This document shows, piece after piece, positions 9,280 through 11,801 of a stretch of DNA of 64,000 nucleotides (positions within the stretch are counted from its first letter, which is position 1; each line of letters begins with the position of its first letter). The position numbers and the translations under genes were made by a program. Below the pieces are notes generated by a model, which was not told where the DNA came from, did not search any database, and saw nothing but the letters and a program-made list of their open reading frames with translations. The stretch lies in the sequence record MN563784.1. One strand, 5' to 3'.

Positions 9280-9399
9280 ATGAGATTGGTGATACCAGAC
9301 ATTGAAGTCTTACAAAAGGCTATATCTAAAAACAGCGCAAATAAGAAATATAGTAGTACTGCATCTTGTCTAATTAATGGTGATAAACAAAATGGCTGA
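9280..9399 (+). CDS. 39-aa upstream ORF overlapping the gp71 start
   Basis: AGGAGG at 9273-9278, ATG 9280, MRLVIPDIEVLQKAISKNSANKKYSSTASCLINGDKQNG, TGA 9397-9399 overlapping ATG 9392. Below the track length cutoff. Confidence 0.45.
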   Translation: MRLVIPDIEVLQKAISKNSANKKYSSTASCLINGDKQNG

Positions 9400-10570
9400 A
9401 CTAGGTAAACGTGAAATTGATCTAACCCTATTAGGGCATACTGGTTTAGATCCTTGGTATGGCACTACCTCATCTGCACGGGGTGCTATGTTTGTAACAC
9501 ATATTGGCCAGGCACCAGAAGTAAATGGAAATGAATCGCGTTATTTCCTAACGGGTGCTGAATTAGAGTATGCCAAGTATACACATGATGTTCGTTTTCC
9601 TGAGGATTGTCGTGTACTACATGTTCTTAGAAAATATCCAACGGGTATTGGTAAAGACAGTATTAGATCTAACCCGGTAACAACTATTATCTACGAAAAC
9701 TATTTTGACAAATATAAAACCATTGGTGTCTTACATGTTCCCGAGTACATGAGTCATCACCAAGACTTTGGTTATGAACTTGTAAAGAATCGAGAAGTGT
9801 GGGAAACCATTGCCCCAAATGAAATGTTCTCTAAAGACACAGTGATTGCACAGTCTGGTGCAGTTAAGAAAGACGGTACTTTAGGGATGGGTGTTAATGC
9901 TAATGTTGTATTCCTATCTGCCGCTGGTACCATTGAAGATGGATTCGTAGCTAATAAGAATTTCCTTAAAAGGATGATGCCAACTAGTTATAGCACGGCT
10001 GTAGCTAATGCTGGTAGGAAAGCTTTCTTCTTAAACATGTATGGCGATGATAAGGTCTATAAACCATTCCCAGACATTGGCGATGTTATCCGACCAGATG
10101 GTGTAATCTTCGCCATCCGTGACCATGATGATGATCTAGCTCCTGCCGAGATGACTCCTAGGGCACTTCGTACACTAGATAGAACTTTCGATAGAGCTGT
10201 TATTGGCACACCTGGTGCGAAGGTTATTGATATTGATATTTGGCGTGATGAGCGTGTAAATCCATCCCCTACTCCAACAGGAATGGATGCACAACTAGTT
10301 AAATATCATACTCATCTTAGCAGTTATTATCGAGAACTATTAAAGATCTATCGTGGTCTATTAGCACGTCGTAAAGATGATCTACATATCACTGAGGAAT
10401 TTGAACGTCTTATTGTAACTGCACAGATGTTCCTACCTCAACCTGATAATGTCCGTAAACTATCTCGATTCTATCGACTAGACCCACTAGATGAATGGCG
10501 AGTCGAAGTAACTTACAAAGCCCAAAAGATGCCTGCTGGTGCTTTCAAGATGACTGATTTTCATGGTGGT
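9392..10570 (+). CDS. nvRNAP beta subunit C-terminal part, exon 1 (phiKZ gp71)
   Basis: Recognised as phiKZ gp71; ends ...GAFKMTDFHGG, the start of the beta GDK..RHGNKG motif, then runs into the intron. ATG 9377 is an alternative start. Confidence 0.9.
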
Positions 10571-10877
10571 AATTAATATCCATCCATCTCTCAGGAATGG
10601 ATATTGTCAAATTGCCTGCTTGATCTCGAAAGAGTCAAGTAAATCCTCTCTAATTGCTGGGACATCTCAATGAGACAATCAGCAGCGAAGCTTTCCAGAA
10701 ATGGATTGAACGTTCAACGACTATCCGGTTACGCGGAGTACACTCAAGCGAGTGGAAATGGGAGGGACCTGACCACCTAGGGTGAAGGTTAAGATATAGT
10801 CTGGTCTGCATGGTGACATGCAGCTGCCTGCAATACGAGAGGCGGGGTAAGCGTAGCGAACTTACCTGAACATAACG
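10571..10877 (+). ncRNA. group I self-splicing intron (IA2-like), 307 nt, no endonuclease ORF
   Basis: P AATTGCTGGGA 10652-10662, Q AATCAGCAG 10677-10685, R GTTCAACGACTA 10712-10723, S AAGATATAGTCT 10791-10802. P1 GGU/AAU pairs with AUUGCC 10611-10616 with the U-G wobble at 10570; terminal G at 10877. Removal restores FHGG-KGVICKV in frame. Confidence 0.93.
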
Positions 10878-11801
10878 AAGGGCGTCATCTGTAAGGTAAT
10901 GGAAGATGAAGATATGCCTATTGACGAAAATGGTAATAGGGCAGATCTAATTATCTTTGGTGGTTCAACCATGCGTCGTTCAAATTATGGTCGAATTTAT
11001 GAACATGGTTTTGGCGCAGCTGCACGAGATCTAGCTCAACGCCTACGCGTTGAAGCTGGACTAGATCGACATGCCAAACCAACCCAGCAACAACTAAATA
11101 GTGTAATGGGTAATACGCAATGGGTTGATTATGCATTTAAAGAACTATTAGGTTTCTATGAGATCATTGCTCCAACAATGCATAGTAAAATGATGGAACA
11201 CCCAAATCCAGCAGAACATGTTAAAACAGTACTAATGGATGGATTCCCATATATCTACGCACCAGTTGATGATCCAGTGGATCTAATGGCAGCAGTCAAC
11301 AAATTAATTAATAGCGATAAGTATCGACCACACTATGGGAAGGTATCTTATCGAGATCAAGCTGGTAAGTGGGTAACAACTAAAGATAATGTCTTAATGG
11401 GTCCACTTTACATGATGCTACTAGAAAAGATTGGTGAAGACTGGTCAGCAGCAGCATCTGTAAAAACACAACCATTTGGTCTACCTTCTAAGTTAAACAA
11501 TGCTGATAGGGCTAGCACACCTGGTCGAGAAACAGCTATCCGGTCATTCGGTGAATCTGAAACTCGGTCATATAACTGTACAGTTGGTCCAGGTCCGACT
11601 GCTGAAATCTTAGACCAAACTAATAACCCATTGGCGCATGCTGCGGTTATCGAGTCTTGGCTAACAGCAGAAAAACCTTCATCTGTACCAGTTGCAGTTG
11701 ATCGTGAAAAGATTCCATTTGGTGGATCTCGCCCAGTAGCTATGTTTGATCACCTGCTTGAATGTAGTGGTATTGCATTAGAATATGCCCCTGATCATTG
11801 A
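10878..11801 (+). CDS. nvRNAP beta subunit C-terminal part, exon 2 (phiKZ gp73)
   Basis: KGVICKVMEDEDMP...ADLII...GPLYMMLLEK...FGESE match the beta KGV...DMP...D...YxxKL...RFGEME motifs. Spliced product is 393+307=700 aa from ATG 9392. Confidence 0.9.
   Translation, partial: KGVICKVMEDEDMPIDENGNRADLIIFGGSTMRRSNYGRIYEHGFGAAARDLAQRLRVEAGLDRHAKPTQQQLNSVMGNTQWVDYAFKELLGFYEIIAPTMHSKMMEHPNPAEHVKTVLMDGFPYIYAPVDDPVDLMAAVNKLINSDKYRPHYGKVSYRDQAGKWVTTKDNVLMGPLYMMLLEKIGEDWSAAASVKTQPFGLPSKLNNADRASTPGRETAIRSFGESETRSYNCTVGPGPTAEILDQTNNPLAHAAVIESWLTAEKPSSVPVAVDREKIPFGGSRPVAMFDHLLECSGIALEYAPDH

Follow-up and report, generated by a model that had tools for sequence, protein, structure and literature searches.

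The locus considered here lies in a stretch of 64,000 nucleotides of sequence record MN563784.1 (hereafter the window), where two open reading frames on the plus strand flank a segment of 307 nucleotides at positions 10571–10877. The question is whether this segment is an intron that joins the two frames into one gene and, if so, how it came to be without the endonuclease gene that was expected from the related phage phiKZ. Approximately 2.4 kb flanking the segment have 100% identity to the Pseudomonas phages KTN4, PA7 and many others (Phikzvirus phiKZ), and on sequence identity the window is assigned to a phage of the phiKZ species. We consider it highly probable that 10571–10877 is a functional self-splicing group I intron of the IA2 type, namely the gp72 intron of phiKZ after deletion of its HNH cassette.

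The interrupted gene and its splice junction

The ORFs on either side of the segment are halves of a single gene, that for the nvRNAP beta-like subunit (phiKZ gp71-73). The features of the gene are as follows.

9392..10570, plus strand: exon 1 (gp71 part), 393 codons, ending in ...FHGG; corresponds to 7OGP_C 1–393 and phrog_3295 7–403
10571..10877, plus strand: group I intron, 307 nt, without ORF; matched by RF00028, skipped in RNA contigs that join 10570 to 10878, 15 helices canonical
10574..10576, plus strand: in-frame TAA two codons into the intron, in frame with the ORF 9377–10576
10878..11801, plus strand: exon 2 (gp73 part), 307 codons and stop, beginning KGVICK; corresponds to 7OGP_C 394–700, PF00562 and phrog_3295 404–692

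The ORF of exon 1 is open from 9377, but the proteins of phiKZ and KTN4 and the PDB chain begin at ATG 9392. Both exons were searched separately and not as a joined sequence. Against solved structures, residues 6–398 of the exon 1 ORF correspond to residues 1–393 of chain C of the phiKZ nvRNAP (PDB: 7OGP; labelled 'PHIKZ071', 700 aa), while residues 1–307 of exon 2 correspond to residues 394–700 of the same chain. The PHROG profile for the RNA polymerase beta subunit (phrog_3295; 698 positions) is likewise divided, with exon 1 at 7–403 and exon 2 at 404–692. The Pfam domain PF00562 (Rpb2 domain 6) was found in exon 2 with 28 bits (cut-off 23.4); the Pfam search of exon 1 returned no match, and this half was identified through PHROGs and PDB. 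Exon 2 aligns with residues 1073–1129 of the E. coli beta subunit, its first residue facing position 1073, which agrees with the placement of the site just before the Lys equivalent to K1073 in the initial annotation. By these matches the host gene has the characteristics of the second-largest subunit (beta/Rpb2) of a multisubunit RNA polymerase, including the HG.KG segment, and the insertion lies inside the conserved HG(G/N)-KG active-site motif of the early gene for the nvRNAP beta-like subunit. Position 10878 is in frame with the ORF 10899–11801. The exact restoration of frame to a 700-aa protein, as it had been proposed, holds only with the start at ATG 9392 (393 + 307 residues), and the product then equals 7OGP_C.

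The splice junction, 10570|10878, reads ...CATGGTGGT|AAGGGCGTC..., and four independent lines of evidence agree on it: the PDB chain together with the PHROG profile, homologues from other genera, the phage KEN49, and assembled RNA contigs. Uninterrupted homologues in two other genera have FHGG-KGV (PS119XW) and WHGG-KGV (Psa21) at this place, and the uninterrupted gene of KEN49, a close relative, has FHGG-KGV. The boundaries and the junction originally put forward are thus those of the solved chain, the intron-less allele, the homologues in the two other genera and the RNA.

The RNA evidence comes from the Logan assembled contigs of four RNA-seq runs, each belonging to a different study and all of the phiKZ type. 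Two contigs from different studies, of 2201 nt (run X10) and 58 nt (run X2), join 10570 to 10878 and skip exactly 307 nt of the window. The 2201-nt contig has every phiKZ-specific variant in both exons, while the 58-nt contig spans no differing site. The same runs also contain the intron with the phiKZ HNH cassette, and the phiKZ variants of the X10 contig together with this cassette indicate that the spliced RNA arose in phiKZ-type infections in which the phage DNA contains the intron. The joint is ambiguous by 2 nt (AA follows both sites), and only with the first position is the 5' site preceded by U and the last intron base a G. Some contigs end at 10877/10878, one of them continuing into Illumina adapter, which fits a free 3' end of the intron. 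Exon ligation in vivo was seen on the ORF-bearing phiKZ allele only; from its 99% identity to that allele we infer that the ORF-less allele of the window is spliced as well.

It is hardly credible that the phage stock contained an intron-less DNA allele which, rather than splicing, gave rise to the joined contigs. Such an allele exists in nature, as KEN49 demonstrates, but the contigs match GGTGGT|AAGGGCGTC without difference across the joint, where KEN49 has GGAGGG|AAGGGAGTT, and both the phiKZ-specific variants of the long X10 contig and the presence of intron and cassette in the same runs speak against this origin. The native phiKZ enzyme has a single 74-kDa gp71-73 polypeptide (PMC4666361), whereas a long-read transcriptome study found no evidence of splicing for the phiKZ introns (PMC10914365). 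The RNA contigs qualify the latter statement and agree with the former.

Two further observations were made on these contigs. All phiKZ-type RNA contigs cease to match the window before the start codon at 9392; the region upstream of 9392 differs between phiKZ and the lineage of the window, and differences cluster within the initial 60 nt of the gene. Contigs derived from a different locus have only 10646–10666 and 10787–10807 (21 nt each; P3-P4 and J8/7-P7') in common with the window, the two stretches being separated by 210 other letters; they represent a paralogous group I intron that is expressed from another place in the phiKZ genome.

Structure of the putative ribozyme

The Rfam group I model RF00028 matches 10595–10823 of the plus strand over its full length (positions 1–253) with 84.2 bits (E value 5.9e-20; curated cut-off 50 bits), and this is the sole Rfam hit within the 64-kb window; the phiKZ copy of the intron scores 87.6 bits against the same model. 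The P, Q, R and S strings in the Rfam alignment are AAUUGC.GG, UC.GCAGC, GUUCAA.GACUA and AAGAUAUAGUCU, so that the complete core described in the initial annotation is borne out by a covariance search of the kind suggested there. The predicted elements are listed below.

10568..10616, plus strand: P1, GGU|AAU (10568–10573) with AUUGCC (10611–10616); encloses P1a; in the minimum-energy fold
10574..10606, plus strand: P1a hairpin, 9-bp arms 10575–10583 and 10597–10605; putative deletion scar 10596|10597 after AGGA
10617..10641, plus strand: P2, GAAA tetraloop; in the minimum-energy fold
10644..10801, plus strand: catalytic core, with P3 at 10644–10650/10760–10766 and P4-P5-P6-P6a at 10655–10713; from the Rfam alignment
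Remainder of the catalytic core, plus strand: P7 at 10719–10723/10797–10801, P7.1 at 10724–10737, P7.2 at 10741–10754, P8 at 10768–10788
10806..10877, plus strand: P9 region, with P9 at 10806–10823 (GUGA loop), P9.1 at 10826–10843, P9.2 at 10845–10867 and a 3' tail to G10877

All 15 helices from P1 to P9.2 were placed by hand and by script, and every proposed pair is canonical, including those of the P9 cluster (P9, P9.1 and P9.2). The minimum-energy fold of 10562–10645 consists of P1 with P1a nested in it, followed by P2 (z = -5.5; 0 of 200 shuffled sequences folded as well). It contains the U10570-G10614 wobble at the proposed 5' splice site, the 9-bp hairpin that had been noticed in the P1 loop, and P2 with its GAAA loop. 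The 5' splice site directly follows U10570, and the intron closes with G10877 as its terminal (omega) G. P7.1 and P7.2, already recognised as IA2-like, appear in the Rfam alignment as an insertion of 33 nt between P7 and P3', and the 3' part of the intron from P7' to P9.2 (10792–10875; intron nt 222–305) has approximately 80% DNA identity to the td intron of phage T4; both features support a probable IA2 type. The initial description of the intron as minimal needs correction: it is compact at 307 nt, yet this is not minimal for a group I intron. Counting against a functional intron, the exon part of P1 comprises 3 bp only, and P10 has at most 2 bp. An alternative P1, in which exon ATGG would pair with CCAT repeats at 10580–10587, was dropped, as it lacks the splice-site U-G wobble and is absent from the minimum-energy fold.

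An endonuclease ORF of the kind found in mobile introns with an HNH (I-HmuI-like) homing endonuclease is absent from 10571–10877, where the only frames of at least 40 aa are chance frames of 43 and 53 aa over the core. In several records, small ORFs over the ribozyme at 10654–10785 (plus strand) and 10650–10811 (minus strand) are given as hypothetical proteins (e.g., PHIKZ072.1); these look like annotation artefacts of overlooking the intron.

The catalytic chemistry of the window intron, which we infer from that known for the family, would proceed as follows. The end of the 5' exon, GGU, would pair with GCC of the internal guide in P1, leaving the U10570-G10614 wobble at the cleavage site, and guanosine would attack after U10570. 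The terminal G10877 would then dock and the exons would be ligated, giving one subunit of 700 aa. Unspliced RNA would be translated only as far as the TAA, whose presence at 10574–10576 agrees with the initial annotation, and production of the middle/late RNA polymerase would therefore depend on splicing.

Comparison of the four allele types described below indicates that substitutions at paired positions all keep pairing, while the other variable sites are located in loops or junctions. The P2 pair 10625-10634 is C-G, U-G or U-A depending on the allele, a compensatory change, and the pairs 10581-10599, 10577-10603 and 10846-10866 turn into G-U wobbles. As it is drawn from four sequences, this pattern is suggestive of selection on the ribozyme but not statistical.

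These data bear on the view that the ORF-less ribozyme is decaying into a relic and has lost efficient splicing, the polymerase being made either from split gp71 and gp73 or with the aid of a protein helper. Two separate CDSs are indeed annotated in most records, and the long-read study mentioned above saw no splicing in phiKZ. A split product would, however, be interrupted within the conserved HGG-KG segment, the counterpart in the alignment of the active-site region of E. coli beta. The usual start of 'gp73' at ATG 10899 would lose 7 conserved residues, the sole purine-rich stretch (AAGG) lies approximately 3 nt upstream of it, and this start looks like an artefact of overlooking the intron. 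In about 34 records the ribozyme sequence is 100% conserved, and none of the changes seen conflicts with its structure; for the phiKZ ribozyme, which has 99% identity, both spliced RNA and a fused protein of 74 kDa are known. We therefore regard decay as very improbable and a functional intron as the preferred reading.

The HNH cassette and the allele series

An HNH gene, gp72, had been placed between gp71 and gp73 of phiKZ in the initial annotation, and PHIKZ072 does sit between PHIKZ071 and the gp73 CDS. The intron is 1218 nt long in phiKZ, OMKO1, fMGyn-Pae01 and FBPa36. Alignment to the phiKZ locus places an exact difference of 911 nt between intron nt 26 and 27 (window 10596|10597), which is the position of the cassette in the ORF-bearing alleles, in the loop of P1a. 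After removal of these 911 nt, the identity to the window intron is 304/307 for phiKZ and 299/307 for FBPa36. The cassette protein has 316 aa, with weak matches to NUMOD4 and HNH_3 that are at or just below the Pfam cut-offs. Its ORF starts 5 nt after GGAG, passes through the 3' arm of P1a and through P2, and has its stop codon at 10640–10642. Because the cassette is located in the P1a loop, the hairpin initially described as extra is the stem closing the ORF-bearing loop and not a new element. At position 10606 the window has G where phiKZ has T, and the G adds a wobble pair to P1a.

Among the 47 records that hold the gene, 36 have the 307-nt form of the intron, four have a 313-nt form, five are ORF-bearing (two of these records being the same phiKZ genome), and one, KEN49, has no intron. 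In the one other record, PaZh_1 (MN871489.1 249333–249610), the match to the intron is broken into two pieces that together cover 91% of its length, which may reflect either another variant or a flaw in the assembly.

The 307-nt allele of the window retains, at the scar, the AGGA of the ribosome-binding site (RBS) of the HNH ORF. The 313-nt ORF-less intron was found in T2P, U1B, U5 (MT995928.1 401–713) and phi9_PA9, and has a ribozyme of the FBPa36 type (seven variants in common). Of the lost HNH ORF it still has the RBS, spacer and ATG, joined through an ATG repeat to the last codons of that ORF, and it corresponds to a deletion of 905 nt whose breakpoints differ from those of the 911-nt type. 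Microhomology was looked for at the window-type deletion (911 nt) and not found; that of the U5 type (905 nt) lies in the ATG repeat. From the retained RBS, spacer and ATG of the second ORF-less allele and from the different breakpoints it follows that the ORF was probably deleted at least twice, once per ribozyme lineage.

Loss of the HNH ORF is, on these comparisons, very likely, and the proposal that this lineage lost the endonuclease and kept the ribozyme is supported by the AGGA remnant and by the independently deleted allele of the U5 group. The 911-nt cassette would have been deleted from the loop of the P1-extension hairpin, leaving the hairpin and the remnant of the RBS, and the ORF-less allele would now be an immobile passenger that is obliged to keep splicing. 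Laboratory deletion mutants of orf72 in phiKZ are viable (bioRxiv 10.1101/2025.11.23.690004), which fits loss of the ORF.

The reverse course, in which the ORF-less intron is ancestral and phiKZ and FBPa36 acquired their HNH cassettes in the P1a loop later, we consider improbable. ORF-less alleles are in the majority (36 + 4 of the 47 records), and the cassettes of phiKZ and FBPa36 are only 80% identical, compared with approximately 98% for their ribozymes, so that the cassettes have had a separate history; endonuclease genes can also invade introns independently. Gain would, however, require that the ancestral loop had by chance an AGGA exactly where the RBS of the ORF begins, and it leaves the U5-group allele with a complete string of RBS, spacer and ATG and no ORF behind it. 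Two ORF-less types on two ribozyme lineages, with 911 and 905 nt between their breakpoints, fit two deletions better.

The locus in KEN49 (PP456877.1 1607–3724; junction at approximately 2800) is a natural intron-less allele in a Phikzvirus. Its exons are of the FBPa36 haplotype except for four synonymous differences around the site, at -4, -1, +6 and +9, and the allele could be either an endonuclease-resistant empty site or the product of precise intron loss.

A second group I intron (74.8 bits) is present in the nearest genome, G001, at 256751–257055, some 4.5–4.8 kb before the position at which the window starts. It splits a phrog_2987 gene (annotated as RNA polymerase beta subunit; upstream exon of 437 aa) and is followed by an HNH ORF of 386 aa, so that the lineage which lost gp72 appears to have kept another intron endonuclease.

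Significance and comparison with known introns

The window intron is the known phiKZ intron in an ORF-deleted form, a finding that is well supported and largely ordinary. The intron of phiKZ has been published, as has the fused gp71-73 polypeptide (PMC4666361, PMC10914365), and the paper on KTN4 already remarks on HNH differences from phiKZ (PMC4908380); the allele series is a modest addition. For annotation, approximately 40 public genomes of the phiKZ type divide an essential subunit into two CDSs with no stated relation, and in many cases add small spurious ORFs over the ribozyme; the correct product is one spliced protein of 700 aa. The RNA contigs provide direct in vivo support for a splice junction of the phiKZ intron that was unseen in one long-read study. 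The allele series (empty, two ORF-bearing and two independently ORF-deleted) offers a compact natural system for the study of endonuclease-driven competition among therapeutic Pseudomonas jumbo phages. The understanding of how group I introns work is unchanged by these findings.

The virion RNAP gene gp210 of phiPA3 contains a group I intron that has an HNH nicking endonuclease (Birkholz et al. 2024, PMC11620839). Like the present intron, it interrupts a jumbo-phage RNA polymerase gene at a catalytic motif, and it supplies the framework for endonuclease-mediated competition between co-infecting phages. It differs in that the host gene encodes a virion polymerase subunit of the beta' type in another genus, and in that the endonuclease is present and was shown to act, whereas it is absent in the window. 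By analogy with this system, the protective role first suggested for the ORF-less intron, which would shield its allele from endonuclease attack, is a plausible hypothesis. A wider and distinctly tentative proposal, which we think rather doubtful, is that all stages of the homing cycle are kept at this site by conflict between phages: phiKZ-type phages with gp72 would, in mixed infections, nick their rivals at the empty site, ORF-less introns would be immune through their split target, and KEN49 would escape by its synonymous changes at -4, -1, +6 and +9.

The life cycle of homing endonucleases comprises invasion, decay of the ORF, loss of the intron and re-invasion. The present site resembles this cycle, as an empty site (KEN49), introns with the ORF (phiKZ, FBPa36) and introns of two types without it coexist in one species group; here the comparison is one of genomes, from which the order and rate of events are deduced. 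The T4 td intron (IA2) shares with that of the window the P7.1/P7.2 architecture, an in-frame stop just inside the intron and a conserved site in the gene for an essential enzyme. The endonuclease gene of td (I-TevI, of the GIY-YIG type) sits in the loop of P6, whereas the ORF site in the window is the loop of the P1 extension and is empty, and the host gene is a different one. Closest of all is the gp71/gp72/gp73 locus of phiKZ, which has the same gene, insertion site and ribozyme and, except for a few residues, the same 700-aa protein, and from which the window differs by being without the 911-nt cassette and its 316-aa HNH ORF.
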